Shown here one piece after another: positions 4,931 through 41,454 of a stretch of 64,000 nucleotides of DNA. Every line of letters starts with the position of its first letter. The stretch's first letter is position 1. The stretch comes from Dendrobates tinctorius (Eukaryota), in the NCBI RefSeq assembly GCF_039654945.1, contig NW_027361696.1, positions 46,686,001 to 46,750,000 on the forward strand. The letters run 5' to 3'. The position numbers and the translations under genes were made by a program. The notes under the pieces are model-generated. The model was not told where the DNA came from, ran no database searches, and saw nothing but the letters and a program-made list of their open reading frames with translations.

Positions 4931-4989
4931 AAAACCGCGCGCCGATAGGCGGAGACTCTCATCTTTCATCGTTTTTAAGAAATCTCAAG

Positions 4990-5952: not shown

Positions 5953-6131
5953 AACAACATGGGAAGGGAAGCAAAAGACCAGAAAAAGCCATACACCTGA
6001 CAAATGCTATTGAGAACTCTGCTAATAGAAGTGGAAAGGAAGAACAAAGACGAAAGAATCTAATTAATAAAAATATTGGAGAAAGAGAAACCAATCACAA
6101 ACTAAAATGTTTCTATACTAATGCACAAAGC

Positions 6132-11690: not shown

Positions 11691-11747
11691 CAGGTCATAG
11701 AAACATGAACACAACAGGAGACCTGGATCCTGTTGCCAGACAATTAT

Positions 11748-14700
11748 TTATTCTGGAAGAGGACTGGCAAATTCAGGTGAGATTCAGGCCTTGTTCATTT
11801 TCACAAAAGTAAGCCGGTCAACATTATCGGCGGATAGTCGTGTGCGACGGTCTGTTACCACACCACCTGCAGCACTAAAGACACGTTCCGATAATACACT
11901 GGCAGCAGGGCAAGCCAGCACCTCCACTGCATACTGGCTAAGCTCTGGTCATGTATCCAGCTTAGAGACCCAAAACTTGAATGGGGAAGAGCCGTCTGGG
12001 AGTACACTAACAGGGCAAGACAAGTAGTCTGTCACCATCTGACGGAAACGTTGCCTCCTGCTGACTGGAGCTGTCTGTGATGGTGTAGCCGTTTGTGGCG
12101 GTCCCACAAAACTTTTCCACATTTGGGCCATACTGGCCTTGCCTTGTCCTGCGGCACTGCCTCTGCTACCTCTTTGTGCAGAGCTTCCTCCACTGCCTCT
12201 ACCCACATGGCTGCTTTGAAAAGCACTACCAGCAACACTTGCGGGGAGAATGGAGAACATGATGGCCTGCACAAGTGTTTCTTGGTACTCCCGCATTTTA
12301 CGCTCCCGGTTCAACTGTGGTATGAGGCTTTGTAAGTTGTCCCGGTAGCGAGGATCTAGGAGGGTGTACACCCAATAATCAGCCGTGTGGAGAATGTTGG
12401 CGATGCGGCGGTCATTTAACAAGCACTGCAGCATGAAATCAACCATGTGCTGCAGACTGCCAACTGGAACGGGAACGCTGTCCCCAGCTTGAGGCAGCAT
12501 CTCAGCCTGCTCAGCATCACCCCACCCTCGCTGTACACACTGACTACTAGAGCCTTGTGTACCTCCCTCCTCTGGAGAGATGTGTTTCTCCTCCTCCATT
12601 GACTCCTCGTCATCCTCCTCACTAAGTGTCCCCTGCCTGGGCCTTTGTGTGGAAGCACGTTGTGCAGACTTGCCAGAAGCAGATGGCATTTCTGACTCCT
12701 CATCCTCGACCTCTTCAAAAACCTCCTCACTTAGTGCTTGTAAGGTTTTTTGAAGCAGACAGATAAGGGGGACAGTCATGCTGACTAGTGCATCATCTGC
12801 ACTGGCCATCCGCGTGGAGTCATCGAAGGCACGCAAAACTTGGCAGATGTCCCTCATAGTGGCCCACTCAGTGGTGGTGAAGTGTGTCCGGCGCACAGTG
12901 CGACTTGTTTGCGCCTGATGCAGCTGGTACTCCATTACTGCTGCCTGCTGCTCACACAACCACTCCAACATATGTAACGTTGAATTCCACCTGGTGGGGA
13001 GGTCACATATGATGCGATGATCTGGCAGGTGGAATCAGCGTTGCAGAGATGCAATGCGCGATCTTGCCATGCTGCAACGCCACAAGTGAGCACACTCTAG
13101 GCGAACCTTGTGCAGCAGTGCATCAAGATCCGGATAGTCCCTCAGAAAGCTCTGCACGACCAAATTGAGCACGTGTGCCAGACATGGTATGTGAGTGAGG
13201 TTGCCTAGGCCCAGAGCTGCAACTAGATTTCGGCCATTGTCACTCACTACCAAACCTGGCTGGAGATTCGCTAGCACAAACCACACATCGCTCTCCTGCT
13301 TGATGGCATTCCAGAGCTCCTGTGCTGTGTGGCTCCGATTCCCCAAAGAAATTAATTTACGGACGGCCTGTTGACGTTTGGCCACACCTGTGCTCATATC
13401 TGGCCTAACAGGCTCATGCAGTGCTGATTCCGAGGAACTACAGTAGGAGGAGGACTCAATATGTACAGACTGCATTCCTGCAATCCTTGGAGTTGGCAGA
13501 ATACGTACAGAGCCACTCTCCAGATCTGTACCCGGCTCCACAACATTGACCCAATGGGCAGTGAGGGAAAGGTATCGTCCCTGTCCATGGCTACTGGTCC
13601 ACGCATCGTTGGTCAGGTGGACCTTGCTACTGACGGCGTTTCGTAGCGCATTTTTAATTTTTCCCTCCACATGCTTTTGCAGGGCAGGGACGGCTTGCCT
13701 GCTGAATTAAAAGCAGCTGGGCACATTGTATTGTGGAACTGCCAATGACATAAAGTTCTGGAAGGTGTCAGTCTCCACCAGCCTGAATGACAGCATCTCA
13801 AGGGCCAGTAGTTTGGCAATGCCGGCATTCAGAGCCAGTGCTCGGGGATGGTTTGCCGAGTATGGCCGCTTTTTCTCCCATGCCTGTGCTACCGATTGCT
13901 GGTGAGTAGCCTGGGAGTGTGCTGATGACGGAGAACGTGGTTCAGTGGGTGGAATTTCACTGGGTCTCTGGACAACAGTGGCAGAGGTTCTTCCATGGCG
14001 TTCCAGTGAGGAAGCCGAACCAGCTGTGTGTGAGCTGGAGGAAGAGGCCCCAACATGAGCTGAAGAGGTGGTATGTGCTGTTGAAGGTTGGCCTACATCT
14101 TCAGTGTGTCTGTGTAACTCCACCTCGTGCTTGGTACGCACATGTTTCCACATATTTGTGGTATTGAGGTTGCTCACATTTTTCCCTCGTTTAACTTTCT
14201 GATGACACAGCTTGCATTTGACAAAGCAAATGTCATCTGCAACTGTGTCAAAAAAAGACCACGCACTGTAAGTCCTGGGAGCGCCCGTTTTGTGTTTTGG
14301 AAGAGGATTGCTACTCACGGGTGCCAAAGTGGAGGCTACAGGCAACCAAGTCTGCCCCCGCCCTCTCCCTCCTCTTTTGGCCATTCAGGGAATCTCTTCC
14401 TCAGAGCTGCTCCCACCACCTTCCTGTGGCTGACGCCATGATGGGTCAAGGACCTCATCATCTCCACTCTTCAAGCACCGGCTGGTCCTGGGTTGTCTCG
14501 CCAGCACTGAACGCACCAGAAACTGGCAACTGAGTCTCAGCATCATCAGATGAGTACTGAGGTGTGCTGACAATAGGCACTGGCCCACCCGCCTCTTCAG
14601 ATTCAGAGGGACAAAGCAGTTGCGCATCACTGCATACTCCCTCTTCTTCACGCTCAAGAATGCTGCTTGGCTGGCCACCTCTTTCCAAGCCAACAGATTC

Positions 14701-15080
14701 TGAGAACAGAAGTAAAGATTGAGATGGCTCCTGTCCAGGGCTCTCAGACTGCCTAGGCAATTTGGCAGGTGGTGAAGAGACAGATGGTTGCTCTTCAGTG
14801 CTCTGGCCCTGAGAGGATGCGGAAGTCATTGAAGTGGATGGGTTAGCTGCCATCCATCCGACAACGGCTTCAATTTGTTCGTCACGCAGCAGTGGGGTAC
14901 GGAGAGGTCCTACAAAGTTGCGCATGAAGGACTGTTGCCTGCTAAAAGTGGGGGATGCCGGGTCACTGGTGGCCGCAGCAGACACCGAATCCCCACGTCC
15001 TCTCCCTGCTGAATCCCCCGTCCTCTCCCTGCTGAAACTCCACGGCCACGACCATGTGCCTTACTCCCTGCCTTCTTCAT
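11748..15080 (-). pseudogene. hAT transposase (BED zinc finger, catalytic core, C-terminal dimerisation domain), disrupted
   Basis: SAWSFF...CKLC...MWKHVRTKH (BED), VHLTNDAWTS, VSDNGRN, HIPCLAHVLNLVV, PTRWNST, LLDPRY and CPAASVLSERVFSAAG. Several frameshifts and stops across ORFs 14458, 14385, 13707, 13035 and 11949. Confidence 0.92.
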
Positions 15081-16064
15081 CTTGGTAGACTGATAAAGAT
15101 AGGCAGAAAAGTAAAAAAGGGGGGGCTTAGTGTTCTTATTCCTGAACACCTGCTAACCAGTATCAGAAACACTAATTTTGCTAAGAGTGTGTGTACTACA
15201 CTTTAATATGATCTAATGTGGCCTACACAACTCTAAAGTGGAGTGTTTGGTGAACTTTATTTCCTTTTTTTTTTGGGGGGGGAAATAAAAGGATGTGACC
15301 AAAGTTTGAAAGCTATAGTATCACAAACTTTTTGGAGCGATTACAATGCAGGAAGCTAACCTACAATGCAATTGATGAGGCTCCAAAAATAGGGTGACAC
15401 TAGTCTGGCTGGCCCTGAAGGGCACAAGCCAGCAAAAAGGCTCCTCTATCTAATCCTATATAGTGTTTGCAACCAACCAATGACAATGGATGCGGATGGA
15501 AGCACACTAATATAGGAGCAAAAATCTGGACAAATTAGCTGCAAAAAAAGGACTATGTATGAGGCAGTGACGCATGCTGAGCGGACTACAACCAGCGGTG
15601 GCTGTAGAACACACTGCAACGTGAGCTGCACTCACACACAGAGAGACCTATCAGACAGCCAAAAACAGTGCAGAGAAATGGGCTATAGCACTGAAAGGCT
15701 GCTGAAAGGCTCCACTGTCCACTCCTTTAGTGTTTGCAACCAACGTATATGGATACGTATGGAAGCACACTATACAGGAGGAAAAAAAAGCAGCAATAAA
15801 AGAAAAATGTGTTTGAGGCAGAGACACACGCTGGGCGGCCGACAAGCAGACGTGCCTGCAGGACACACTACACAGCGTGGGTTTGCACTCACACAGCCCT
15901 TGCAGACAGCTATTAAAACAGTGCTGCTGGGCTAAAAAAAATGCTACAGTGGTGGATTATGTAGCCTGGGTAGAGCAATAGATATGTTTGATGATCGCTA
16001 TTTCTAACTGTCCATCACAGTCTTCAACAGCAGCCTGTCCCTAACTGAATTCACAGCAGAGTGA

Positions 16065-16120
16065 ACCCGAAATGGGGGCTGCTGCGGTTTTTATAGTACA
16101 TCATTTCAGCAGCCAATCAC
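16065..16120 (-). promoter_or_regulatory. Putative hAT transposase promoter (CCAAT plus TATAAAA), copy 1
   Basis: TTTTATA near 16090 (TATAAAA on minus) and AGCCAATC at 16111. The same arrangement occurs in copy 2. Confidence 0.45.
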
Positions 16121-16340
16121 AGCCATGCCAGTAGTTAACATGCCTACATGCCTAACAGGATGTGCCCACACTTCTGAGGATCCCCATTGGCTGAATCAAA
16201 TCGAGCGGGCTCCTAGCATTATGGGAACTTCCGATTCTGGTATTCGATATGACAAAAGTATCGGAACTAAGTATCGGAATTCCGATACAGCTAATATCGG
16301 CCGATACCCGATACTTGCGGTATCGGAATGCTCAACACTA

Positions 16341-17316: not shown

Positions 17317-17711
17317 AGCCCCCTTTACATTTAGCAATGCACCAGCGATCCCTACCATGATACGACCCGGTCAGGATCGCTGGTGCATCGCTAAATGGTT
17401 GCTAGTGAGCTGCCACACAGGCAGATCTCAAAGTGACGGAGCGACGCAGCAGCGGTCGTTACTTACCTTTCAAACGCGGCGATCCTGACGTCCTCCCGCC
17501 CGCGTCCACGCGTCCCTCATCAGTGCCAGCAGGAAGCCCAACGGGAAGTGCCCGATGAGAAATGGAGCTGCACGATCTCGCACGATCAGCGACAGAAAGT
17601 GCGGGAGCCGGTCGGAGATAAGTATCACACATAGCGATATCGCTGCTGCGTCACAAAATCGGTGATGCTTTAGCGATATTGCTAGCGATATCGCTATGTG
17701 TAAAACCCCCT
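17317..17711. mobile_element. PIF/Harbinger-type MITE (AGCGAT/ATCGCT-rich family)
   Basis: TAA/TTA flanks and imperfect TIRs. Homologous to 39214-39619. Absent at the paralogous site near 39150. Confidence 0.8.
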
Positions 17712-20562: not shown

Positions 20563-20897
20563 CTTATAGCCAACTATTGACTCTTGCATCTAAAGCACTT
20601 TAACTTCTTGAATCAGAATTGTCTCCTATGTGGGATCCAGCAGCTGCTCAAGACAGACATAGCCATCATTTATTGTTAAAGATGTAGATCAGGATGCATA
20701 ACATGTGTCTGGGGAGCCCTCCATGTGGTTTTGTGCACATGTTCTCATACTACAGTAGTTTATGAAGACAGTTATGTAAAATTCTTAGGGATATTGAATA
20801 CAGAATGGGGGACCCCTAGCTCCCTGCTGAGAACCTGAGAGGAGGATATTAGGTGGATATGGCCCTATGAATATGTTGTGCAGCTTGGCTTGTATTA

Positions 20898-21302
20898 GGG
20901 TACCTTCACACTTGGTAACGCACCAGCGATCTCAACAATGATATGACCTAGTAGGGATCGCTGGTGTGTCACTACGTGGTCACTGGTGAGATGTCAAACA
21001 GTCAGATCTCACCAGCGATGCAGCAACAATGCAGAACAATACAATGGTCGTTGGGACCCTGTCTCTCAAACCTGTAGTATTAAGGTCGTTCGTCGTTGTC
21101 CCTGTCAAACACAGCGATGCATGCTGGCCAGCGGGACACAAGTGATTAAAAAATGGCCCAGGACATTCGAGCACAATTAGTGACATCGTAGCAGGGGCCC
21201 AATCGCCGCTATGTGTCACAAGTAGCAAGATCGCTGTTGCGTCACAAAATCAGTGACGAAACAGCTATCTCGCTAGCGATCTCGCTATTTGAGATGGGGG
21301 CT
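20898..21302. mobile_element. PIF/Harbinger-type MITE
   Basis: TTA|GGGTACCTTCACAC start and ...GATGGGGGCT end. Same family as 22056-22451. Confidence 0.75.
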
Positions 21303-21481
21303 CTAGGCACATAATGACCTTGAAGTCTCAGCGCCCCAGTCATTGTACCCAAAGTCAATCATAACTTATAAACAGATAGGCTTAGAGGAACCAGACCAAC
21401 AATGGTTACAATGTACCTTTTTGAAGAATATGAAGATGACATATGACATAAGGAAGACATTTTTTCATTTGAAATTAAAGT

Positions 21482-21653
21482 TTTATTGAAATAACAAATG
21501 TCACAAAATAATGAAAATACACAAAAGATCCAAGTATCGTCAGTGTCATCAAAATGGGAAGAAATCTTTAGTAACTGGATCCAGAATTATATGGGGCTCA
21601 GATTAGGAGTCACCGGTCCTTCTGCTAACTCCACCAGCAAGAAAATATTTTAT
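21482..21653 (-). other. Terminal exon (stop plus 3' UTR) of ZCCHC3/ORF1-like gene copy A
   Basis: Acceptor TTTTTTGTTCTACAG|A TAA at 21653. AATAAA on minus at about 21482-21487. Both conserved in copy B. Confidence 0.6.
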
Positions 21654-22019
21654 CTGTAGAACAAAAAAGAAATGTACATATTACACTACCATGAAATGCA
21701 CCAAAAGGCAAAATATTATGAAATATATAATTTTGTAAAATGTTCTCGACAGCCTTGATTTTTTTGAAATTGCCCAGTTTTAGATCTGATGGCTCACAAT
21801 ATAAGTGATTGTAACAAGATATGTTCATCCCCAAGCTCATACAGATCAGTTCTGAGTCATTATATTGTGCACAGTAGATTATAAGGATTGTAGCTTCCAA
21901 GAAAACTCAAAATATATAAAAGTTTAACATCAAGTGCATTGTTACATAGTTGACTCAAGAACAGATACATGATATTTGGAGACCCTTGTAATGAATGGTG
22001 GAGGGCATTGTCCTCTTAC

Positions 22020-22900
22020 CTTTTACTCTTCCTCTGCTGCTTCTTGGCTTTCTTAGGGTACCGTTACACTAAGCGATGCACCAACGATCCCGACAGCGAT
22101 ATGGGTCGCTGGTGCATCGCTAAGTGGTCGCTAGTGAGCTGCCACACAGGCAGATCTCACCAGCGACATAGCAGCGGTCGGGGGTCGCTACTTACCTGTC
22201 AAACACGGCGATCCTGACGTCCTCCCGTCCGCATCCACGCGTTGCTTTTCGGCGCCACAGGAAGCCCAGCAGGAAACGCCCGACGAGAAATGGCCCAGGA
22301 CGTTCTCGCACGATCAGCGATAACCAGCAGGGGAGCCGGTCGCAGGTAAGTATCAGACATAGCGATATCGCTAGCGATATCACTGCTGTGTCACAAAACC
22401 TGTGACGTTTCAGTGATATTGCTAGTGATCTCGCTGTGTGTAATGGGGGTTTTAGATGTCCTGTCCTGGATTTCCTTGATATCACCAGGATAGTCCTTGA
22501 AAATATAATCTTGCACAATGCAGCTGCCGCAGAGATTTGTCATGCTGTCCTCCTTGTATTCCATTGTCATCCTTCTATGCTCACTCAATGACTTGTCTGA
22601 ATAAGAAATTATTGCTTCTGAGTCTCCTATTGTGCATCTTTCTGGTAAATGCATGAGTCCACTAAATGGTAAGGACTGGTCTTGTCTCAGTCTGACCATG
22701 ACAGACCAGTTTCCAGTCCAGAAGCCTAAATTATTTAAGATCTTGGTGGGACCTTTCAACACGATGCAGAAGCGTCTCAAGTATTCAGCAACCTCCTTCC
22801 TTGGTGTATGAGGGTTTCGTACTGACACTATCACTTTTATTTCCTCTATGTTAGTGGCGCAGTTAGAGGAGATAGTTTCTGGTCTTGACGATTCATCCAT
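22020..22900 (-). pseudogene. ZCCHC3-like / Tx1-L1 ORF1p-derived gene, copy A, main coding exon interrupted by a MITE (161 aa when the MITE is removed)
   Basis: VIVSVRNPH...EVAEYLRRFC...LGFWTGNWSVMVRL...GLMHLPERCTIG...ISY. Removing 22056-22451 plus one TAA restores DRTSKKAKKQQRKSK and the donor AG|GTAAGA at 22020. Confidence 0.75.
22056..22451. mobile_element. PIF/Harbinger-type MITE inserted in a coding exon
   Basis: TTA TSD at 22053-55 and 22452-54. Absent from paralog B. Confidence 0.9.
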
Positions 22901-24029
22901 GATCTATTCCTTCCAAAGATTAAAGCGTAGCAGAAGAGTTTAGAAGGGTTTTCTCCAGAATGTATGAGGGCAGAGCAAAGAACCCTCTTTTTATCAGACT
23001 GAGTAGGGGCTGGATGGTTTCCTGTTATTGTCTCCACCATCTTGGGTATCAGGTAGAGTAAATCTGATTTACATTGCAAAAGTCTATTCATTATGTGATG
23101 AACTCACACAAAACTTCTCAGAAAAAAGGTTCCCTCCAAATCTCTCTCCATGGTCATATGTCAGGATTTTTCTATTTATCTGTCATGTATCTTTTATATT
23201 TTTTATTTATCACATTTATCTTTCCTGCTATTTAATAAGTAATCATTTACTGGTGTATAAATGTCAAAAACTAATTTAATTACGGTAATTAATCTGTAGT
23301 TATATCTATTGTGAATCGGTATTTAGGCAATTTGTTCATCAAATGATCTATCATAAAAAAGTATAGATATACTGTATCTACAAAAATATAAAATAGTTCC
23401 CAACATCTGCAATAATTCAAATAAAAATAATTTGCTTTGCTTCTATCAGTTGTAAAAAAAAAGATTCTGATACACAGTGCAGACCATCCTGAAAAAGTTC
23501 CTCTTCTTCTCCTTAGAAGACTCTGGTTTATATTGTTGTAGATATGTAGTGTCTGAACTATCTGTATGAATATGTCTATATATTTTTAATGATAAATATA
23601 TAGAGGTAGCTGACCAGGTCAATAAGGTGTAGAAATGTTTAATAATACAAAAGTAATCATAAGTCATATATTAATACATCCATAAAAGTACAAACGAATG
23701 CAGATATAATATAAATCACCAAAATATATAAAATCCATAGCAATACATGCAGTGATGCATCATACAAGGTGTGAAGTGCATAAATTCATAATAATAATGC
23801 TCATGTGTTAGAATAATTAAAGTAGAGGACATCCTGCCAAATAAAAAAGTGTTGACAGCGTGGCTTCTGCATTTTGGAATTATAGTGAATGAGGACCTTA
23901 TCTATGTATCCCACCACTTCAGTTATGTTTTTCAGGAGGTAGAGATGCATATATGATGTCTTCCTCCTATGAAATGGCACTCTAGCATAACTCCATAATT
24001 TCCATGAATTTTCTTTGTAACATGATCTT

Positions 24030-24560
24030 ATATCACATTTACATTAGTCTGCATTACTATTTTAGAACAATTTATAGATGTTTCAATTTCACAGAAAGAA
24101 TGAATATTGACCATTTCCAAGTAAGAAAAATAATATCTATATGTTGTAATCAATTCAGAAATGACTGAAATTTTGGGATAAGCATTACATTGGACCCCAT
24201 TGTGGTACCCCTTCATTAAAATAAAATTTGACATCTTAACAAAGACTTTTTTTAAACAATTATCAAAGAAGAGAAGATTGAAATGATTGCTGAAAAATAA
24301 TGTCATAGGAACTTAGCCAAACCTATGTCATGAATCATAGAAGTTTGAAGATTTAGTATTTCAAATGATATTAGATAGCCATTATCAAGAACAATAAAAC
24401 CAGAAATCATAGTAAGAAAGTAAAATATGTCCTTGATAAAAGAGGATGAATTATTTACAGAGTGATGTAGGATTCTGCCCAGGTAATTGGCAACACTGGA
24501 AAAAATAGACCCCATACAGGACACTGTAGGATGAACTGAAGACTGTCTCAGGTCTTAAAT
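24030..24560 (-). pseudogene. Ancient Penelope-like RT fossil
   Basis: VSCMGSIFSSVANYLGRILHHSVNNSSSFIKDIFYFL...LISFEILNLQTSMIHDIGL resembles PLE RT motifs 2-3, followed by KGTTMGSNV at about 24190-24215. Confidence 0.7.
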
Positions 24561-24687
24561 CTTGTATGAAACGCTCATATCTAGCTATATATTGAACCTA
24601 TCAACTAATATTTTTGCATATCTTCTACCCAAGATCCTTATCTAATGACCTACACATCTGTGGAATCTATCACCTAAAATATGTGTA

Positions 24688-25038
24688 GATTCAAGGAAAA
24701 GAACTTTTATGGATTAAGCGTGCGCTGCCAGACTATCACTCCTCACAAGTAGTGTGCTTTATACATTTATTTCCCATTTCATTTAGGGAAATAAATGTAT
24801 AAAGCACACTACTTGTGAGGAGTGATGGTCTGGCAGCGCACGCTTAATCCATAAAAGTTCTTTTCCTTGAATCTGATGATTTATGGCCACGGCGTGGTCA
24901 TTTGGATGCGCAGCAAGCTGACCTTGTTCCTTTATGTCTGATACCCTCCTACATAGGGTGAGTATAACGAATTGTTTTACATTCTTATTTTCTCGGGTAA
25001 GACTCTATTGCGCTCTTTTTCTTGCAGTTTTTACCATA
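24688..25038. mobile_element. Short insertion with an 89-bp-arm palindrome, probably an inverted Penelope pLTR
   Basis: 14-bp TSD CTAAAATATGTGTA at 24674-24687 and 25039-25052. Arms 24687-24775 and 24786-24874 with one mismatch. Donor-like GGTGAGT and GGTAAG downstream. Confidence 0.7.
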
Positions 25039-25191
25039 CTAAAATATGTGTACGCATACAACCATAATTTTGAACTGAAATTTGTATTTTAAGTATTAGA
25101 AACAGTAATGATTTCAGAAAATGACAAAATTGTGATATGCTGTATATTATATGCTTTATACAATTTCTACCTATCAATCCTGATTCCCAAC

Positions 25192-26325
25192 TAACATAGT
25201 AACATAGTTTTGAAGGCTGAAGGAAGACCTTATGTCCATCTAGTTCAGCCTATTTTTAGTGCAGCTGTTCTGCATTGTTGATCCTGGGGAAGGCAAAAAA
25301 CCCACAGAGTAGAAGCCAATTTTCTCCATAGGGAAAAAAATTCCTTTCCCTAAGCTGGGACAACCGTCTACCTATAATATTCTGTTATTCGTAACCTTCT
25401 ACACTGTTACTCACAAGAAAAGCATCCATTCCTTTCTGAAATTCTTTCAGAGAGTTGGCCATCACCACTTCCTCAGGAAGAGAACTCCAGAGCCTCACTG
25501 CTCTTACCGTGAAGAACCCTCTTCTATGCTGGTGCAGAAATTGTCTTTCCTCCAAACAAAGAGAATGCCCCCTTGTTCTTGTCACAGTCCTTGGTACAAG
25601 CAGTTCATTGGAGAGATCTCTGTATTGCCTTCTGATATACTTGTACATATATATTAAATCTCCCCTAAGTCTACTCTTTTCTAGAGTAAATAGGCCTAAT
25701 TTTGATAACCTTTCTGGGTATTGTAGTGAACCAACTCCATTTATCATTTTAGTAGCCCGCCTTTGAACCCTTTCAAGTTCAGTAATGTCTTTCTTGAGCA
25801 CCGGCATCCAAAATTGCACACAATACTCCAAGTGAGGTCTGACGAGTGGTTTGTACAGAGGGAGAATTATGTTTTCATCTCGTGTCCCCAGACCTCTTCT
25901 AATGCATCGCATGACCCTATTTGCTTTGGTGGCAGCTGCCTGACACTGGGCACTCCAATTTAGCTTCTTATTGACTAAGATGCCTAAGTCTTTTTCCATG
26001 TCTTATTCCCCAGCAGTTTCCCATTTAGTAAGTAATTATAGCATTTGTTTCTCCTTTCCATGTGCATAACCTTACACTTATCTGTGTTAAACCTCATTTG
26101 CCATTTTTCAGCCCAATTCTCCAATTTACTCAAATCTGTCTGTAGTTGCAAACTGTCCCCCTTTGTGTTAACTACCTTACATAGTTTTGTATCATCTGCA
26201 AATACTGATATTTTACTGTGTAAGCCATCCACTAGATCATTTATAAATATATTAAATAGTAGGGGTCCAATACAGAACCCTATGGTACCCCACTAGTAAC
26301 CCTGGCCCAATCTGAGTATGCACCA
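25192..26325 (-). mobile_element. Older CR1 3' fragment of a different subfamily, with a (CTATGTTA)n tail
   Basis: FADDTKL, KCKVMH, EKDLG and RPHLEYCVQFW in ORFs 25984 and 25385 (frameshifted). TAACATAGTAACATAG at about 25192-25207. Confidence 0.9.
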
Positions 26326-29300
26326 TTAATAAAAGTAATAAAAGATTGATACTGATAATATTCATGATATCAGGGAGTTGGAAAAATAATTATAATACAT
26401 ATGGGGATCTTTCATCTATTTAAATATATTTCACATCACGCTTCAGATACATTTATTTTTCAGACAATTAACCCTGTCATCTACATATGAAATGCTCTGT
26501 GTCTACAGCTGGCTTGGGTGGATCCTGGGGATGTTCATGTCTCTTCTCATGCTGAGTTGCTCATGAGATTACAAAGCTCTTGACAAGTGTGATCTCTGCA
26601 GAGTCTCTTTTGTTTTGAGCATTATTCTATCAGGTCAATTACTTAATTACATACAGAACTGCAGAACAAACTATTCAACCAATACCTGACTGGTTTCTGG
26701 AGAGGGAAACGGGGACAAATTATAAATGTTGTTTAAATTTAGAATTATAAATATTTTTAAAATGTTTCTTTCTCTCATATGTATAATAGAATTTTTATTA
26801 TTTATATAAAAAAGTAATAGCCTGATACAAACGGGAACTAATTATGTGATGTGTTTCATGCCTCTGTGTGTCATATTGTAAGAGATATTGCTAATATTGA
26901 TTTTTGATAGGTGAAAATCAACATAGATGTGTAAGATAAGTAAAAAGCGTATTACAATAAGTTATGCAGGAATTTATAATGGAAAGTTAAAAAGTTGCTC
27001 AGTTTGGTGCAGTCATTACTCTCTAACACCTTCTAATTTTCATTTGCATTAGTGCAGAATTGTAATATATATAATCCATTTACTAAATAGGTAGGAAGAT
27101 ATTTATGAATCTTGGGTAGAAGATGCAAGACCTAAAACATCACAAATTAATAACTGCCATTGTTTTATCAAGGACACATCTTTCTATGGTCTCTGGTGTA
27201 ATCATTCTTCTTGATAATGACATACTAAATCATTTCACGGTTTGGGATTATGAAAGGTGGTCGGCCCAGGTTTGCAGCACATGCACTACCTGAACTTATT
27301 GCAGTGTTTCCCAACAAAATATTGTAAAATGTAATTTTATTTGTTTTTGATAAAAAAAATCTTAATGTTAATATGTGATAATTTTCTTAATAAAGGGCCA
27401 CCGCCATGGTGTGTAATTAAAAGGCTAGCCAACAATTTCAGCTGAGTTCTGAGCTTGTTGTGATATACAGATTATATTTTCTTCATATTGATGGGTTCCT
27501 TTGGAGAACTTGATGTGTTTCATACTAATCTCATTTGTATGCACCTCAAGGTAAAATTAGCTTGATTTCTGTCTCTTTTCCATGTTGTTTTTCTCTATAA
27601 CTGTATCGATTTCAAGGTTATATCAATATAAAGTTAAATACCTGCTTTTCTGTCAAGCTTCTTCATCAGAATAATTTATTCCTTCACAATCGCTGACATT
27701 ACTGAGTCTTGACAATTTCTATCCCCGTGGCTTTTAATTTGGAGGAAGAAAATCATTATCAATGGATTCTTTACTATTACCAGACTTGTTGTGATGTGCA
27801 ATCAGCTCTAACTGAATATCTACACAGTTTTATTTGCCTATTTTCTATTTCATATCTACTTACCCACCTATGTCACATGTTTTTTTGTGAAGGAAGAGAC
27901 AGGATACAGCCATTTGTGGAGTTTGGACAAGGATTATAAAACATATATGGGGAACGTCAACTTATTTTGTAGCCATTTCATTAACATACTTCCTCATACA
28001 AGTAATTTATCCTGGGGCTGTTAACTCTGTCATCAACATATGAGATGCCCTGTGTATACAGTTGGCTTGGGTGGATCCTGAGTTTGTGCTCCTCTCTTCT
28101 CATGCAAAATTGGTGACGGAATTAGAAAGCTCCTCAAAAGTGCGACCTCTGCAGTGTGTCTTGTTTCTTATGGATAATTCTATTAGGTCAATTGGATTAT
28201 AATAACAGTGACCTCCATAATGTTATGCTACAAGTGCACTAACAGATGTGTTCCAGACCAATATGCCCAAAACCTGCCAGGTTCTTTTAAAGGGCAATGA
28301 TTAGCAAATATTTAATCTGGAACTTAAATTATGTATAATCGATAGAGAAAAAATAATGTTATTTTCTCTCCTTCTTTATCCCTCTGAAGAATGTATTTAT
28401 TACATAGAAAGTGACAATTGATGTCATCTGCTTCAAATTTGTATCAATATCTCATATCTGTTCATTTATTTATGCTATATAAGTGGTCTATCTACGGCTT
28501 TTTCAATATCGCCCTGTCTTAGTATATTTATGAAACAGTAAAGGCTTTAATAAGTAGAGAATGATGACATCGACACTTGGGGGCACAGGATAAAAAGAAA
28601 CAGACAAATGGGGTCCTGAACAACACTGTAATTTGGGGTACAGGATAATGATGCTTACACTTGGGAATATTATGAAGAAAATGTGTAAAAAGCATAAAGC
28701 AATATAAGTGATGCACGATGTATAATGGCTATTTACCAAGTGTGTCCAGTTTGGTGTAATCATTATTTTCTTATACGTATAATCCAGGTTTAAGTTCTAA
28801 TTTTCATTGTGTGACAGAAAAAATGTTAAATATATATTACATTCACTAAATGTGTAGTACCATAGATATGAATCTTGTGTAGAAGACCTGAAACATGACA
28901 CAACGAGGTCACTGTATTGTGTCCTGAATGGCATCCATATTTTTCAGAAAAACTATTTAGAAGGACAGGATTCTACACAAATTCAGAAATATGCCATCTT
29001 TTCATCAAGGACTTATCTGACTATTAATATGATCTCTGGCCTAATAAATCTTGATAATGAAATCCTAATGTTGTTAGACATACTAAGTTATTACACGTTT
29101 ATCAATTATTAAAGGGGATGACTAATCTCTCCTTCACACTCTCTACCAGAATTTACAGCAGCATTTCCCAAAAATAATTTGTTGGCTCATCTTATAATTG
29201 TTCTTTATAGAAATATCTTTATGGTAAGGAGTGTTTTTTTCCAATAAAGGGGTGCCACCTTGGGTGGCTTATAACGAGTGCAATTTCCTGTACTACTCAG

Positions 29301-31331
29301 AGCCCGGCACTCACAGGGGTCCCGTAACAGCATTATTTTCTCTCCCTCACCATTATCTCTCAATTCAATTCATCTCATTCATTCATTCATATAGAATTCC
29401 AGTTTGCTATATATAGCGCTATGCTTTATTAAGTTGCATTTATTTTTAAGTATAGTGCCGTCCCATATTATATAACTTCCTCTTGTTATATATAGTGTAG
29501 TTTCTTATTACATAGTAGCCTCTACTGGGTATAGCGTTGCTATTTTAGCACTCTACACAAGGAACAAAATTTGCATTGTCCATGTAGCACACCAATGTCT
29601 CTGCTGTCTTACATTTGCACACATACATCTCTGTGTTAAACACTTGACCTATCACATCTCAAAGGGGATCTTGTCACATGTCATGTGATACATCAGGTGC
29701 TGAGGGCACACTCTGTAGAGCCAGAGGTCCTGGCTACTCTTAATCCACCCCAGGGAACCGCGATGGGGTCGAGTGTAAAGGCTAAACCACAATTTTAGCT
29801 GAATTCTAAGTCTGTTGTGATAAATAGAAATTATTTTCTTTCATATGGATGTGCTACTCTGATGAACTCCATGAGTTTCACAATTACCTTATTTGTATGG
29901 ACTCAAGGGTAAAATTAGTACTGGTTTCAGTCAACAATTTTGTTGTGTTTTTACATGTAACTGTATCGATTTATGATAATATATTATGTACCTGCTTTTA
30001 TATCAAGCTACTAATATCTGCCATTACTGAGCTTTGACAATTATTTTCTTACCACAAAATAATAGGCTACATGGATAAAAATGTAATCAATGTGTAATCA
30101 ATGGAATGTTTACATCTATCAGACTTAACATGTGGCACATAATGTTTCTTGTCAAGGAAGAGTCACGACACCATCATTCTCATTATGTAATAAGTAACAT
30201 TTATTGAGTTTCTTCAAGGATTATACAACTTATAATTTACTGATTGCAATGGAGACTAAGATTTATGCAATCTGTACATTAAAATACAGATAAATGAAAT
30301 AGAAATATTTTCTTCATCCTTCTGATGTATTGACTTATGTATTAATTATAAAGTGAAAATGACATCATCTTTTTCCAACTGGTATCATTACCTCATATCG
30401 GTTAATCTATCTATACTGTGTAACTGGTCTTTCTTTTTCCTGTTCTATATCTTCCTGTCTTAATAGATGTGTGAAATATTAAAGGCTTTAATAAGTAGAG
30501 AAAGAGGAAGCAGACTCTTGTGGTACAGAATATAAAGAAACTGACAAATGGGGTTCTGGACAATGACACTAGAACTTGGGGTACACGATGATAAAAACAA
30601 GAATTGGAGGTATAGAAATCTGAAATGCTGACAATTGGGGTACAGGATAATAACAGCCTGAAACTTTATGTCATTATCCAGTATTTAAGTGTGAGCATCA
30701 CTGTACTGTACCCATAATGGCACAATGACACTTGGGGTTCAGGATATTGACACAATGAGATTTAGGGTACAGGACAACTAACTTGATGGATTAACACTTT
30801 GCAATCTTGTACTTTTTTTTACCTCTTCTGCCTCGTTCTAATCTGGATTCCGGCAAGGAGGGTACCCCAGTTCTACCACAACCGACCCAGAGATATACGG
30901 GGTGTATATATTATACAGAAATGTCACATCTGTATATTGCTTTTAGATACAAAAAATGATTCTTTCTTATAATAAAGATCTGGAGATGAATCTGCAACTC
31001 TGTGATTTTTATTTGTGAAGAACCTGGGAACACATGTAGTGTATTGCCATGTACAGAGGACCAGAGCAGCTCATACATACAAGAAATAGATAGAACAATG
31101 CAGGAGATAAAATCTAACCATTATTTGTTTTATTGTTGTAAAAAGTATACACATAATTGAATGGGAGTATTTGCACCCAGTCTGTCATAATCCAGAATTA
31201 CAAATCCATCAATTTTAACCCTAAAAGACACAGATTTGGAGGAGCCTGATTTACATTGAGAACAACTTTTCCCTATTGGATGAATATAAAGATGACACAA
31301 GGGAGAGACATTTCTGGATTAAATTCAAGTT

Positions 31332-31599
31332 TTATTGAAGCAACAAATTTGACAAAATGATCAAAATATACAGAGGATTCAAGTGTCCACAGTTTCATCT
31401 GTCGGTACTAAGTCCCAGTGCTGATGTGTTCATAAATAAGTTGCTTTGGGAAAAATTGGCATTCTTCATAGAGATCGGATCCAGAATTAGTTTTCAAATT
31501 CAGATGGCACCATTTCTTCTGTCATTCTATGATTCTATGATTCTATGATTCTATGATTCTATGATTCTATCTCCATCAGCAAGGAAATCATTATTTTAT
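31332..31599 (-). other. Terminal exon of ZCCHC3/ORF1-like gene copy B
   Basis: Acceptor CCTTATTTTCCCACAG|A TAA at 31599. AATAAA on minus at about 31332-31337. Confidence 0.6.
31524..31570 (+). repeat. (ATTCTATG)~6, an isolated CR1 tail
   Basis: Same octamer as the CR1 tail at 8927-8950. Absent at the paralogous position in copy A (about 21625). Confidence 0.85.
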
Positions 31600-31966
31600 C
31601 TGTGGGAAAATAAGGACAAAATATAGATATTACATCACTATGAAATGCAACAATAGACAAAACTGTCAAATGTAACTATTTTTAGAAAATATGCTGGAAA
31701 AATCAGATTTTTTTCAGAAAGGGCCCCATTTTATATATCATTGGACTCAATAATAATGAAAGAAATAAAATATATTCTGTCCCAAACTTATCCCAATTAA
31801 AACTGGCTCATATTTTGTGCAGTAGATTATAAGATTTGAAGATGGCAACAAAAATTACAATAAATTAATGTCAGCATCAAGTTGGTCGATACCCAATTGT
31901 CCCAAGAACAGATATATGATATTAGAAAATCCAGGTAATGAATGATGGAGTGCGTTGTCCTCTTAC

Positions 31967-32448
31967 CTGTTAGTCTTTCTCTGATGCTTCTTGGCCTTCT
32001 TATTTCTTCTGTCTTGGAATTCTTTCAGGACACTAGAATAGTCATTGAAAACATTGCTTTGCAGAAGGCAGCTGCAATAGAGATGTGTTATGTTGTCCTC
32101 CATATATTCCACCATCATCCTTCTATTCTCGCTCATTGACTTGTCCGAATAAGTAATGATTGCTTCTGAGTTTCCTAATGTGCATCGTTCTGGCAGATGC
32201 AGGAGACCACCATCAGAAAAGGACGGGTCTTCTCTCAGCCTGACCATGAAAGACCAGTTCCCGGTCCAGAATCCAAAGCAATTTAGCATCTTGGTTGGAC
32301 CTCTCAACACGGTGCAGAAGCATCTCAAGTATTCAGCAACCTCCATTCCAGTTGTATGAGGGTTTTGTACCGATACTATCACTTCTGTTTCCTCTATGTC
32401 AGTGGCGCAGTTAGAAGAGACAGATTCTGTTCTTGATAATTTCTCCAT
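31967..32448 (-). CDS. ZCCHC3-like / Tx1-L1 ORF1p-derived protein, copy B, intact 161 aa, no zinc knuckle, basic C-terminus
   Basis: ORF 31963..32448 is colinear with copy A without indels. Donor AG|GTAAGA at 31967, then terminal exon and polyA signal. Confidence 0.75.
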
Positions 32449-32737
32449 TTTCTATTCCTCCCAATGATAGATGTATAGCAGAAGAGTTCAGAATGGCTTT
32501 CTCCAGGAGAATGTATGAGGGAAGAGCAAAGAACCCAATTTATATCAGACTGAGGAGGAGCTCATGGATTTCCTGTCAATGTCTTCACTACCTTGGGAAT
32601 CAGGTAGAGTAAATCTGATTTACATAACAAACATCTATTCAGTAGGTGCAGAGCTCACCCAAAACTTCTCAGAAAAGATTTTCCCTCCAAACCTCTCTCC
32701 ATGGCCATATGTCTGTCATATGCTTGTCTATCTCTCA

Positions 32738-34887
32738 CAGTGGCGTATCTAGGGGGGGCATCCGGGGAAGTTGCCCCGGGCGCAGCCATCAGGGGGCGCA
32801 GTCGGGCCGCCTAATGCAGCGGTCCGCAGTGTCCTCCCTGGCGGCTGTGTTCTGCCGCCCCCCGGCCTGAGAGTCGGCGGTTCTGTCAGCTGTCAAGCTG
32901 ACAGCCGGCGCAGAGAAGGAGGCCGTGCCGGCTCCCAGGGAACAATTGTACTGGCGTCTATACAGACGCCAGTACAAATGAAGCTCTGACCGCCGGGCCA
33001 GAGCGACGTCAGCATCGTGACAGGTCATGTGATCACGCTGCTGACGTCACTCCCCGGCGCCCAAAGCAAACGCTGGTGGTAAGTGTGCTCCTCTGTGGAG
33101 CTGAAGAACCACCGAAGATGGGAGATGAGGGGGAGTTAATGAGTGGAGATGGGGGGGATTTGTAGAGGGGATGGCGGTTAATGTGTGGGGGTATTTAGAG
33201 TGGGGATGGGGGTTAATGTGTGTGGGGGTTAATGAGTGGGGATGCCATGGGGTTAATCTGTGGGGGGATTTGGAGTGGAGATGGGGGTTATTTAATGTGA
33301 TGGGGGTTAATGAGTGGGGATGGGGGTTAATGTGTGTGGGGGTTAATGAATGGGGATGGGGGTTAATGTGTGGGGGTATTTGGAGTGCAGATGGTTATTT
33401 AATGTGTGGGGGGATGTGTAGAGGGGATGGCGGTTAATGTGTGGGGGTATTTAGAGTGGGGATGGGGGTTAATGAGTGGGGATGGGGGTTAATGTGTGTG
33501 GGGGTTAATGAGTGGGGATGCCATGGGGTTAATGTGTGGGTCGATTTCGAGTGGAGATGGGGGTTATTTAATGTGATGGGGTTAATGAGTGGGGATTGGG
33601 TTAATGTGTGCGGGGGTTAATGAATGGGGATGGGGTTAATGTATGGGGGCGTTAATGAGTGGGGTTGGGGTTAATGTGTGGGGGTATTTGGAGTGCTGAT
33701 GGGGGTTAATGAGTGGGGATTGGGTTAATGTGTGGGGGGATTTGGAGTGGGGATGGGGGGTTATTTAATGTGTGGGGGGGATTTGGAATGGGGATGGGAT
33801 ACTTAATGTATGTGGGGGATTGGGGATGGGGGATTTAATGTGTGGGGAGATTTGAGGACACAAAATAAAGAGTATGTATGAGGAAACAGTATGGGGGATT
33901 GGTGCAGACAGTATGGGGAGCGAATGGGTTAATGTATGTGGATGGACACAGTATGGGGAGTCAGGGATATGTGTGAGCAGACAGTATAGAGAGTGAGGGG
34001 GTAAATATATGAGGAGACAGTATGGTGAACAGGTGGGATGCTAGAGGGGAATAGTGTGAGGAGACAGTATATTGCAGATATTTTTATTTAGGAGCATTAT
34101 AATGACACTCCTATCTTTAAGGGCGTCGTGTGGAGATTTGCTGCAGAAGACCGGAGAAGATGGATGTCTACAGAGACGAGATGTGGATGAGAAAACTCAT
34201 CATGGGGTCTAGAAGAAAAGGTGACTGACTTCAGAGACGATGTCATCTATAAGGTACCTGGATGTAAACATTATTTGTGATACTGACTTGTTCTCATGTT
34301 TTTATTTGTTAGGAACATTATAGGGGTTGTCCATGTTTGTGCTGAGTCTGCTGTCATTCTATGTGACTGCAGACTTCTGAATTCTCACAGTGCTCACTGA
34401 ACGCTGTTAGGATTCTCTCATGCCGGTAATTTACATACATGCGGTCACATGCTGACTAGACATGTGTGGCCTCACTCAATGAAAATGAACGGAGCGAGGC
34501 CGGGCACGTCTAGTCGGAATGTGGCCAGAAGTATATATATCACATACTTGTGCTGACATGACGGTACATCAGCAAGGGAGAATCCTAAAAGTGTGCAGTG
34601 CATTTGTTGTGAGAATTCAGAAGCTGCAATGTCAGGACTCAGCTCTGCAGGTCGCCGTAGTCATCACATGGACACTTCACTCATATGCGATTTTCATAGG
34701 TATGGTCCTGTGACAACAAGCTTCTCTTCCTGCTTCTCTCAGTTTTTTACTGAACATTGAGAGCATTAGGAGGAGCAGCTCGCAGGTACATGGCTAAGTG
34801 TTCAAGTCGCATATGTACTTGGGCGGGGGCGGGGGGCGCCGAACCGAATTCTTGCCCCGGGTGCCAGAAAGCCTAGATACGCCTCTG
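32738..34887. mobile_element. Non-autonomous hAT element with a G-rich internal minisatellite
   Basis: TIRs CAGTGGCGTATCTAGG and CCTAGATACGCCTCTG (one mismatch). Exact 8-bp TSD ATCTCTCA at 32730-37 and 34888-95. Confidence 0.93.
33120..33860 (+). repeat. G-rich minisatellite (GGGGTTAATGAGTGGGGAT-like units)
   Basis: Many GGG/GGGG runs with TTAATG spacers, directly visible. Confidence 0.9.
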
Positions 34888-36450: not shown

Positions 36451-36897
36451 AGGCCCCGTCACACACAGCGATCTCGCCAGCGAGATCACTGATTTTGTGA
36501 TTTCACAGCGATCTCGCCAGCGAGATTACTGTGTGTGACATGGATCAGCGACCAGCCCCCCTGCTGGGTATCGCTGATCGCGCTCCATCGTCCTGGGCCG
36601 TTTTTTGATCTCTGGTCTCCCGCTGGCCAGCATGCATTGCTACATGTGGCAGCGAGAGTCCAGCGATCATCAACACTGCACTTTGGTTTACAATGTAGAC
36701 AGCGGGTATCTAAGAGCCGCACGGCTCTTGGACACTCGCTGTTTACATTGGAAACCAGCTTGATCGCTGGTCCTGATCGCTGGAGGGGCTGTCTATGGGA
36801 CTGCTCACCAGCGATCAGCCTAACAATGTCCCAGTGATCCCATCCATGTTGCATCATTGGTGGGATCACTGGGACATCGTTATGTGTAACAGGGCCT
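36451..36897. mobile_element. PIF/Harbinger-type MITE
   Basis: TTA|AGGCCCCGTCACACA...TGTGTAACAGGGCCT|TTA. Reverse-complement homolog at about 51161-51595. Confidence 0.9.
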
Positions 36898-37154: not shown

Positions 37155-37493
37155 AGTTATGTGACGTTATAGCGATATCGCTATGTGTGATACTTACCTC
37201 CGACCGGCTCCCCCGCTGTCCATCGCTGATCGCGCGAAAATGTCAGGCTCTATTTCTCGTCGTCAGCTTCCTGCTGAGGCTTCCTGCTGCGACGACGAGC
37301 GACGCTGGAGGCAGGCGGGAGGACACCAGGATCGCTGTGTGTGAAAGGTATCGTGCGCTGCGTCACTGCTGCATCACTGTGAGGTCTGCCTGTGTGACAG
37401 CTCACTAGCGATCATTTAGCGATGCACCAGCGATCCTGACCGGGTCGGATTGCTGGTTGGATCGCTGGTGCATCGCTAAATGTAAAAGGGCCT
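37155..37493. mobile_element. Truncated Harbinger-type MITE, reverse orientation relative to 39214
   Basis: Ends TGTAAAAGGGCCT|TTA. Reverse-complement match to 39214-39560. Confidence 0.75.
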
Positions 37494-39213: not shown

Positions 39214-39619
39214 AGGCCCTTTTACATTTAGCGATGCACCAGCGATCCGACCAGCGATACAACCCGGTCAGGATCGCTGGTGCATCGTTAAATGATCGCT
39301 AGTGAGCTTCCACGCAGGAAGATCTCACAGCGATGCAGCAGCGACGCAGCGGACGATACTTACCTTTCACACACAGCGATACAGATGTCCTCCCGCCCGC
39401 GTCCAGCGTCGCTCGTCTCACACGGCAGGAAGCCCAGCAGGAAGCTGACGACGAGAAATGGAGCTGCCCGATCTCGCGCGATCAGCGACAGACAGCGGGG
39501 GAGCCGGTCGGAGGTAAGTATCACACATAGCGATATTGCTAGCAATATCGCTATAACGTCACAAAATCAGTGATGTTTTAGCGATATTGCTAGCGATATC
39601 GCTATGTGTAAAACCCCCT
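39214..39619. mobile_element. PIF/Harbinger-type MITE
   Basis: TTA TSD at 39211-13 and 39620-22. Absent at the paralogous site near 17765. Confidence 0.9.
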
Positions 39620-40921: not shown

Positions 40922-41454
40922 CAGCTCTGGCAAAAATTAAGGGGCCGCTTTCAAATGTTCAGTTTGTCAGATTTTTCTATTTATATGTATATTTTTGAGT
41001 AAAATGTAAATTGTGTTTTAGTCTATAAACTTCTGACATCATGTCTCCAAATTTCCAAGCAAAAAATGTTATATTTTTTTTCTGACAAAGAAAAATGGTC
41101 AAAATAAAAAAACAGTGCTTTCAGACCTCAAATAATGCTAAGAAAACAAGTTCATAATCATTTATAAACAATAATACTAATGTTATAACTCAGGAACAGT
41201 TCTGAAATCAATATTTTGTGGAATAACCATGATTTATAATCACAGCTTTCATGCGTCTTGGCATGCTTGCCACCAGTCTTTCATGCTGTTTCTGGCACAA
41301 AAATGTAAGCAGTTCTTCTTTGTTTGATGACTTGTGACTATCCATCATCCTCTTGATTACATTCCAGAGGTTTTCAATGAGGTTCAGGTCTGGAGAATGG
41401 GATGCCCAAGACAGGGTTTTGATGTTGTGACCACTTGATTTTTTTCCAGAGCTG
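40922..41454 (-). mobile_element. Internally deleted Tc1-like element
   Basis: TA|CAGCTCTGG...CCAGAGCTG|TA. Encodes WASHSPDLNLIENLW...SMPRRMKAVI...GYSTKY. Confidence 0.9.

Follow-up and report, generated by a model that had tools for sequence, protein, structure and literature searches.

The question raised by a 64-kb stretch of DNA from the frog Dendrobates tinctorius (contig NW_027361696.1, positions 46,686,001 to 46,750,000 of the forward strand; hereafter the window, in whose own coordinates positions are given) is whether two short minus-strand paralogs in it, unit A (21416-23190) and unit B (31272-32742), are debris of a transposable element (TE) or genes that the host has made out of one. 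An earlier note on the window had described them as spliced host genes domesticated from open reading frame 1 (ORF1) of a retrotransposon without long terminal repeats (non-LTR). In this paper, we have examined the two units, the protein that they encode and their relatives in other frogs, and we consider it likely that A and B are tandem copies of a selected host gene, which would derive from ORF1 of a long interspersed nuclear element (LINE) of the L1/Tx1 type and have originated in hyloid frogs.

Paralogy of the two units

Blastn and alignment showed the units to be homologous in three blocks: B 32009-32713 is 82% identical in nucleotide sequence to A 22461-23162 (the open reading frame (ORF) and upstream block), B 31567-32002 is 72% identical to A 21625-22055 (the putative intron region), and B 31272-31399 is 76% identical to A 21416-21550 (around the poly(A) signal). 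The paralogy of the two units, as it had been described, is thus borne out at 72-82% identity, and the window holds these two copies of the unit. The ORF of unit B starts with an ATG, runs from 32448 to 31963 on the minus strand and encodes 161 amino acids (aa); this intact coding sequence (CDS) of 161 codons plus TAA (31963-32448) is backed by the ORF list, a match to Pfam PF23058 and an AlphaFold2 model. In unit A, a miniature inverted-repeat transposable element (MITE) interrupts the frame after codons 1-148 (22455-22900, minus strand; ORF list and PF23058), and the removal of the MITE and one copy of its TAA target site gives (449+34)/3 = 161 codons. The two proteins align without gaps and are identical at 99 of 160 positions (62%), close to the 60% previously estimated by eye. 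Furthermore, the 483-nt CDS contains no indel between A and B, whereas the upstream, intron and 3' exon parts together show 12 events over about 1000 nt (Poisson P = 0.003 for the zero in the CDS), so that the non-coding flanks are indeed rich in indels as had been noted. Because the intron is retained in both window copies, the sequences identify A and B as tandem duplicates made at the DNA level, and a retrocopy origin of the duplication is ruled out.

The encoded protein

Both proteins match PF23058, the second RNA-binding domain (RBD2) of ZCCHC3, with E-values of 6e-18 in B and 2e-18 in A (65-67 bits against a cutoff of 27), and neither has a zf-CCHC match in Pfam at E up to 1, which agrees with the earlier description of a ZCCHC3-like domain without zinc knuckles. 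The first RNA-binding domain (RBD1, PF23057) has no match in A or B either: the ATG sits just before RBD2, and no significant trace of RBD1 was found 5' of it, the only match being one of 13 aa in Rhinoderma at E 4. The unit B protein is composed of an RBD2 resembling the RNA recognition motif (RRM) at residues 20-103, a decayed knuckle region at residues 104-140 and a basic tail, RRNKKAKKHQRKTNR.

The AlphaFold2 model of B, based on 27 homologs, has a predicted local distance difference test (pLDDT) score >90 for residues 21-100. When this model was compared with the PDB by VIA-align, all 50 top matches were RRMs, with Z 6.5-7.7 and root-mean-square deviations of 2.0-3.8 for most of them, and those at Z 7.0-7.7 aligned 73-88 residues. 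Foldseek returned only weak RRM rows from the PDB (E ~0.02), and the top matches of a shape search in the ESM Atlas were ZCCHC3-family clusters; the structural comparison that had been suggested for this protein therefore yields an RRM-like fold with ZCCHC3-family neighbours, Foldseek itself being weak. By sequence, nothing beyond E 1.5 was found in the PDB with B, and the feature search of the ESM Atlas was uninformative (scores ≤0.81). The predicted model has one helix, with a loop and a hairpin in place of the second RRM helix. Canonical ribonucleoprotein (RNP) motifs are not evident in it. Strand 3 carries W61, G63 and W65, which are nearly invariant in the family, and in the alignment the window proteins keep these three residues as well as the family-invariant N29, L41, C45, H84 and L85. 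On balance, we favour the view that the protein would bind RNA via the aromatic face (W61, G63, W65) of the RRM-like domain. The basic C-terminal tail is probably helical, and such a basic helix may help RNA binding.

It had been proposed that the CCHC knuckles, which normally follow the domain, were replaced in these proteins by a different tail. This reading is ruled out, since the region after RBD2 is colinear in the alignment with the three knuckles of LINE ORF1 proteins and still holds knuckle relics. All ligands of knuckle 1 are lost. The relics of knuckle 2 are C124-x2-C127-x4-Y132-x4-Y137 in A and Y124/C125/C127/N132/Y137 in B, where the first Cys is gone, and the Rhinoderma ortholog keeps this knuckle intact (CX2CX4HX4C) as its only one. 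Relics of knuckle 3 persist in Bufo and in L002, a Logan contig from another frog, and the basic end is shared by the Rhinoderma ortholog, where it reads KRSKKTKKNQKKK. This pattern indicates that the knuckles decayed in place, independently and to differing degrees.

Parentage in L1/Tx1-type LINEs

An exhaustive HMMER search with the B protein gave 99 relatives, 30 of which were checked by name and three by fetching their loci. The 30 name-checked relatives come from amphibians or fish, apart from one row that carries the label of a bacterial metagenome-assembled genome; they are mostly annotated as 'uncharacterized' or 'ZCCHC3-like', and amniote ZCCHC3 is not among these 30. A word-indexed protein search with B gave no match, which reflects its limits of shared words and length window and not an absence of relatives, as the 99 from HMMER make clear.

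Each of the three fetched loci is a LINE ORF1 with an ORF2 adjoining. In Pelodytes ibericus (locus L003), ORF1 (11353-12822, 489 aa) carries PF23057, PF23058 and zf-CCHC, and ORF2 (12859-16239, 1126 aa), which carries Exo_endo_phos, RVT_1 and zf-RVT, starts 37 nt after ORF1; the ORF1+ORF2 pair is repeated in tandem. The second-best match to B, P0002 of Rhinoderma darwinii, is 50% identical to B over residues 1-102 and is the ORF1 of an ORF1+ORF2 pair in a long LINE array (L005). The third locus is L004 (gene model of P0017), and here too ORF2 sequence comes directly after an ORF1-like stretch. These loci identify the RBD1-RBD2-three-CCHC architecture in frogs as the ORF1 of L1/Tx1-type LINEs, and amphibian and fish L1/Tx1 elements have been described to encode an ORF1 protein (ORF1p) with RRM and CCHC domains, which is Type I in the classes of Khazina and Weichenrieder (summarised in PMC5203782). 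The origin from a non-LTR retrotransposon ORF1 that had been claimed for the units is thereby upheld, the same architecture being the ORF1 of intact frog LINEs with an endonuclease (EN), reverse transcriptase (RT) and zf-RVT ORF2 downstream.

The Rhinoderma array L005 (CM116783.1, 58.9 kb) is itself of some complexity, as two L1/Tx1-type LINE families, each with ORF1 and ORF2, alternate in it head to tail. The ORF2s of one family are 73% identical to the Pelodytes ORF2 and those of the other about 35%, and RefSeq merges ORF1 pieces across 38.8 kb of the array into the single 'gene' of P0002.

A clade of immobile mini genes

The best match to B is the Rhinoderma protein XP_075696976.1 (P0001, E 1e-84). 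A maximum-likelihood tree built on the domain places A and B as sisters (100/99), in a clade with Rhinoderma domains 1 and 2 and with L002 (98/93; Shimodaira-Hasegawa-like approximate likelihood ratio test (SH-aLRT) 99 with Bufo added), which is nested in an unresolved bush of frog LINE ORF1s. Rhinoderma has duplicated the domain inside the ORF, and the window species has duplicated the entire gene with its intron. The mini genes of Rhinoderma, Bufo and L002 are without RBD1 and ORF2 like the window copies, and the upstream TATA block recurs in L002, where the ORF is followed by a GTAAGA donor. The frame is intact in B, in its ortholog in X1 (a DNA sequencing run of a close relative or conspecific), in Rhinoderma, in Bufo and in L002. 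Since Rhinoderma and Bufo belong to different hyloid families, Rhinodermatidae and Bufonidae, and fall in one mini-gene clade, the mini gene would predate the family split. The gene family is thus lineage-specific as had been suggested, and the level at which this holds is that of at least these two hyloid families, not of one species.

No L1-type ORF2 was found in the 64-kb window, where tblastn with the Pelodytes ORF2 recovered only CR1 RT sequence at 7413-8045 and 3-425, nor in the 10 kb to each side of the ortholog in Rhinoderma, and the A/B alignment revealed neither a poly(A) tail nor a target duplication where the units end; the lack of ORF2 and of a poly(A) tail remarked on before is accordingly confirmed for the window. 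Unit B has a contig depth of 47-123 in X1, compared with 6,000-30,000 (summed) in the repeat just upstream, and the X1 contigs of the CDS of the B ortholog are without gaps. The copy number is low, judged by this depth and the two copies in the window. These data bear on the view that the units are ordinary TE copies of a mobile, non-autonomous retroelement with ORF1 only (a 'half-Tx1'), which would fit a duplicated unit that barely exceeds the gene in size. Against it stand the low-copy depth in X1, the intron in both copies, the bare unit ends, the 5' limit of homology in B, which is set by a later high-copy repeat and not by the end of an element, and the relatives of the same structure, which lie in a BTG5-like neighbourhood in Rhinoderma and in a fused RefSeq model in Bufo. 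We regard a mobile half-Tx1 as very improbable.

The repeat upstream of unit B is a GC-rich stretch at 32708-33100, directly 5' of the unit, which is of very high copy number in X1, where its summed depth compares with about 60 for unit B, and is also caught by the presumed-RNA runs described below. A G-rich minisatellite of approximately (GGGGGTTAATGAGTGGGGAT)n follows at 33121-33854, with higher-order periods of 35, 75, 107, 162 and 237, and the GC skew at 32001-34000 is strong (0.38). A similar G-rich tandem array is located downstream of the Rhinoderma ortholog (L001 16054-17837).

Selection on the coding sequence

Over codons 1-146, A and B differ with a synonymous rate (dS) of 0.40 and a nonsynonymous rate (dN) of 0.18, i.e. 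a dN/dS of 0.44 (P = 0.003 against neutrality); the ratio is 0.33 in domain codons 25-100 and 0.42 in codons 101-146. When either A or B is compared with either Rhinoderma domain over the first 103 codons, dN/dS is 0.19-0.27 at dS 1.0-1.25, and this cross-species path falls entirely after the shared mini-gene ancestor. Moreover, 15 differences are listed between B and the corresponding X1 sequence; those in the domain comprise three synonymous changes and one conservative replacement, and most replacements lie in the tails. With ratios between paralogs and between orthologs well below 1, as a domesticated gene should have it, the codon data indicate that RBD2 is under purifying selection since its immobilisation.

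Promoter, splice and 3' signals

The upstream block of unit B, which would comprise the promoter and 5' untranslated region (UTR), spans 32449-32742 (minus strand) and is about 85% identical to that of A, placed by alignment at 22901-23190 (minus strand). A TATA box, CTGATATAA, is located in B at 32548-32540, 96 nt 5' of the ATG. The same CTGATATAA is found in L002 and in the Rhinoderma ortholog locus, there also about 95-105 nt before the ATG, and A carries the TATA-like CTGATAAAA instead (22997-22989). Further 5' of the TATA box, a block TGTTATGTAAATCAGATTTAC is kept between genera (B 32612-32632, A 23060-23080, Rhinoderma L001 9330-9350 and 9806-9826), within which TTATGTAA resembles what we take to be a PAR-bZIP/NFIL3/C/EBP-type site. 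The upstream block of B is 74-78% identical to Rhinoderma L001 9265-9378 and 9741-9828, compared with a difference of 58% at synonymous sites, which speaks for a promoter and 5' UTR under constraint.

A GTAAGA donor, an acceptor about 370 bp downstream, a stop codon and AATAAA had been reported for both copies, and all of them can be read in the sequence. The putative donors are CAG/GTAAGA in B (31967/31966) and AAG/GTAAGA in A (22020/22019), and the putative acceptors are ...cacag/A in B (31600/31599) and ...ctacag/A in A (21654/21653). They delimit a putative minus-strand intron of 367 nt in B (31600-31966; GT 31966-31965, AG 31601-31600) and of 366 nt in A (21654-22019; GT 22019-22018, AG 21655-21654). 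The 3' exons that follow, also on the minus strand and with approximate end coordinates, are 31310-31599 in B (3' UTR; AATAAA at 31336-31331), which includes a (ATAGAATC)n microsatellite at 31524-31570, and 21460-21653 in A (AATAAA at 21487-21482). A 13-nt donor block, AGGTAAGAGGACA, is identical across A, B and Rhinoderma, and the acceptor with the first 20 nt of the following exon is conserved among the three. In the Rhinoderma ortholog, the intron is of similar length and ends ..YAG/AT, the exon after it opens with the conserved sequence, and both the motif ATTCTGGATCC and a poly(A) signal are present. If the splice sites are used, AG joins A to give AGA followed by TAA, and the unspliced transcript reads AGG TAA, so the same 161 aa result both ways; as the putative intron overlaps the stop codon, it is effectively a 3' UTR intron and the protein is unaffected by splicing. 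The reads of X1 cover the intron, by which X1 is recognised as DNA. An Rfam scan of both introns gave no small-RNA match, and the sole Rfam match inside a unit is MIR4387 in the MITE of A, at 35.8 bits against a cutoff of 84.

The BTG5-like neighbourhood

In Rhinoderma, the mini gene sits between two BTG5-like (maternal B9.10/B9.15) genes on the same strand, LOC142662649 and LOC142662650, with the next BTG5-like gene about 18.6 kb downstream. In Bufo gargarizans, the RefSeq isoform X2 (P0143) joins residues 1-140 of the mini ORF exactly at the donor to a BTG-domain protein. The two arrangements give a hint of donor usage and of possible maternal expression. It could be argued from both arrangements, as well as from the lack of a stop ahead of the donor in L002 and Bufo, that the units are alternative upstream exons of a neighbouring BTG5-like gene and give an RBD2-BTG fusion protein. 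The window argues otherwise, since no BTG exon is present in the 21 kb downstream of A, the 8 kb between the units or the 31 kb upstream of B. A stop lies at or just before the donor in A, B and Rhinoderma alike, and in A and B the next exon opens with TAA, so that no fusion protein would be made there; the nearby acceptor, 3' exon and AATAAA are conserved as well. In addition, RefSeq annotates the mini gene and the BTG5-like gene of Rhinoderma as two separate genes, and the Bufo model is possibly a read-through artefact. A search of the part of Rhinoderma L001 that overlaps the upstream BTG gene model found no BTG exons. We therefore hold the alternative-exon reading to be improbable.

The MITE in unit A

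The MITE is 396 bp long (22056-22451, boundaries from the A/B alignment) and lies in A at codon 148-149. It is flanked by a TAA target-site duplication (22452-22454 and 22053-22055), has, by alignment of its inverted repeats, the termini CC(G/A)TTACAC..AGCGA and is taken to be PIF/Harbinger-like. As it stands, the ORF of A (22900-22391) encodes 169 aa: homology to B ends after codon 148 and the frame continues into the MITE up to a MITE-borne stop at 22393-22391. What is left of the C-terminal codons of the former frame, (K)KAKKQQRKSKR plus TAA, lies severed from the ORF at 22016-22052 (minus strand). The 161-codon frame that had been assigned to copy A is hence that of the restored gene, which would end in ..KKAKKQQRKSKR as against ..KKAKKHQRKTNR in B, and the present copy is truncated by the MITE and has lost the basic tail. 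The distance of about 370 nt from the MITE-borne stop to the splice junction is far beyond that of the usual 50-55-nt rule, so spliced mRNA of A would likely be a target of nonsense-mediated decay. The numbers of private replacements in A and B are similar (13 and 11) and the terminal branches near-equal; the MITE insertion is therefore either recent, or constraint has not yet relaxed.

The MITE is a member of a dispersed family, about 390 bp in length, which has at least eight copies or fragments in the window, about 77% alike, its relatives lying at 17322-17703, 39222-39611, 37170-37485, 20884-21018, 21151-21306, 36454-36603 and 51165-51586. The family has internal palindromes (GCGATATCGCTAGCGATATCGC), and one fragment sits within a 240-aa ORF at 50987-51709.

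A selected gene or decaying relics

Several observations weigh against a selected host gene. One of the two copies is disrupted by the MITE, and B carries R43C and I54M at positions that are nearly invariant in the family. The disordered N-terminus (codons 1-24) has an A/B dN/dS of 1.26 and is neutral, and the A/B ratios average both branches and are silent on whether A remains constrained. As for expression, three small presumed-RNA runs (X2-X4) have reads that touch only the microsatellite and the GC-rich repeat and lend no transcript support to the units. The 64 kb of the window, with no BTG exon in them, give no sign of the BTG5-like synteny, and the domain tree was built without canonical tetrapod ZCCHC3, so that descent via a host ZCCHC3 paralog is excluded only by nearest-neighbour evidence.

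The MITE, the dead knuckles, the two substitutions in B, the N-terminal ratio and the presumed-RNA runs, which do not cover the units, would all suit the view that the units are functionless, decaying relics, i.e. old immobile ORF1 fragments whose apparent constraint is a product of past selection or of chance. On the other hand, this view has to contend with a dN/dS of 0.19-0.27 over a path of dS ~1 after the shared mini-gene ancestor, with no indels in the CDS against 12 in non-coding sequence, with an upstream block kept at 74-78% when synonymous sites are 58% different, and with the frame intact in B, the X1 ortholog, Rhinoderma, Bufo and L002. Decaying relics are in our judgement unlikely. 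The immobile, low-copy host gene family under selection that had been proposed is favoured by the mini-gene clade, by the conserved promoter, donor, intron and 3' exon, and by dN/dS ratios of 0.19-0.44.

In the selected-gene reading, the gene would have been born in hyloid frogs from the Type I ORF1p of an L1/Tx1-type LINE, with only RBD2 retained and RBD1, the long C-terminus and ORF2 lost. The three zinc knuckles would have decayed in place, leaving a basic tail at the end, and the gene would have acquired signals of its own, including the TATA box some 96 nt 5' of the ATG, a donor (GTAAGA) at the stop codon, the intron of about 367 nt, a short 3' exon and AATAAA. A tandem duplication at the DNA level would then have produced A and B, of which B has stayed intact and A has lost its basic tail to the MITE.

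Relation to known systems and possible function

The mini genes share with Type I ORF1p a homologous RBD2 (50% identity to Rhinoderma P0002 and 39-41% to the Pelodytes ORF1) and a colinear knuckle region with a basic stretch after it. They differ from it in being without RBD1, a working knuckle, the acidic/proline-rich C-terminus and ORF2, and in being of low copy number with a TATA promoter, an intron and a poly(A) signal of their own. ZCCHC3 is a vertebrate co-sensor in innate immunity, which binds L1 RNPs and suppresses LINE-1 (PMC10351740, PMC9580041), and it is termed only 'gag-like' in PMC10351740. PF23058 is common to ZCCHC3 and the window proteins, and ZCCHC3-family clusters are their best structural neighbours; however, ZCCHC3 has RBD1, RBD2 and three CCHC knuckles, whereas the window proteins have RBD2 only.

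L1TD1 is a mammalian gene domesticated from L1 ORF1 (PMC11925450) and is likewise a case of a LINE ORF1 turned into an immobile host gene for an RNA-binding protein. In contrast to the mini genes, it derives from a Type II ORF1p (coiled coil, RRM and C-terminal domain), keeps domains in duplicate and represents an independent event. Similarly, a 196-aa 'novel protein' of Xenopus tropicalis (NP_001297036 / CAJ82497; P0113, in the cluster of P0010), whose record names suggest a cDNA origin, is short, starts just before RBD2 and is without RBD1. It has three intact knuckles, though, and its place in the tree, next to P0020 (X. tropicalis, 'ZCCHC3-like') and outside the mini-gene clade, makes an independent derivation probable. 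Restriction factors derived from gag, among them Fv1, to which the units had been likened, offer only a conceptual parallel, that of a retroelement structural protein kept by the host: Fv1 is of endogenous retrovirus gag origin and acts on capsids, and it has no homology or mechanism in common with the mini genes. In full-text literature searches we found no paper on a gene from a Type I ORF1, on ZCCHC3 as a domesticated ORF1 or on the frog mini genes, and the orthologs are annotated merely as 'uncharacterized'. The domestication of a LINE ORF1 is already known from L1TD1; what appears to be new here is a Type I-derived, RBD2-only, knuckle-less family in hyloid frogs.

As to function, the binding of L1 RNPs and the suppression of L1 by ZCCHC3 make an anti-LINE role conceivable. 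By this analogy, we tentatively suggest, with considerable doubt, that the protein may act on LINE or maternal RNPs, for example by competing with ORF1p for LINE RNA. A more specific scenario is distinctly speculative: an RBD2-only germline or maternal factor might recognise the RNA of the parent Tx1-type LINE and block RNP assembly, and where the donor joins a BTG5-like gene, it may instead bring that RNA to the CCR4-NOT deadenylase. If this were true, a LINE-derived targeting module for the decay of transposon RNA would have evolved in hyloid frogs.

Other elements of the window

The window is TE-rich vertebrate DNA, with CR1 LINEs, BED-finger transposase-like ORFs, Tc1-like fragments and a Ty3/Gypsy-type element. 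A full-length CR1-type LINE at 4906-8864 has an ORF1 with a GDSL/SGNH esterase domain (348 aa) and an ORF2 with EN and RT (910 aa); a second, inverted and partial CR1 copy lies at 1-2389, and a CR1 RT fragment at 25385-26232 between A and B. Also between the units, a near-perfect palindromic hairpin of 86 nt (24738-24823) matches the mir-944 model at 66 bits on both strands (cutoff 100) and other microRNA families more weakly; it is most likely a TE-borne inverted repeat and not a known microRNA. An ORF of 696 aa with a BED zinc finger (52539-54629) is probably a hAT-like transposase or a ZBED-type gene. Its second copy is broken into pieces at 11949-14985, about 40 kb away, and the same 'MLE(W/R)LCEQQAAVMEYQLHQAQTSRTVRR' segment follows both copies. 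Two near-identical 110-aa fragments of a DDE_3 (Tc1/mariner-type) transposase, at 41208-41540 and 45180-45512, lie 3972 bp apart, which points to a local tandem duplication of about 4 kb. Finally, 58958-61907 holds a Ty3/Gypsy-type pol (aspartyl protease, RT, RNase H, integrase, SH3_Tf2-1 and chromodomain), the frame of which is broken between RT and RNase H.

Significance

Host genes derived from a LINE ORF1 are rare, L1TD1 being the standard example. Even if the genes should prove silent, they document how pipelines name such loci 'uncharacterized' or 'ZCCHC3-like'. The mini genes would show a path by which a LINE nucleic-acid chaperone is reduced to a single RNA-binding domain, with stepwise loss of knuckles by lineage, gain of gene signals, long selection (dS ~1 between genera) and tandem duplication. 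The position beside maternal BTG5-like genes points to where expression might be sought, and since intact LINEs of the parent type persist in frog genomes, interference between the fragment and its parent would be directly testable.

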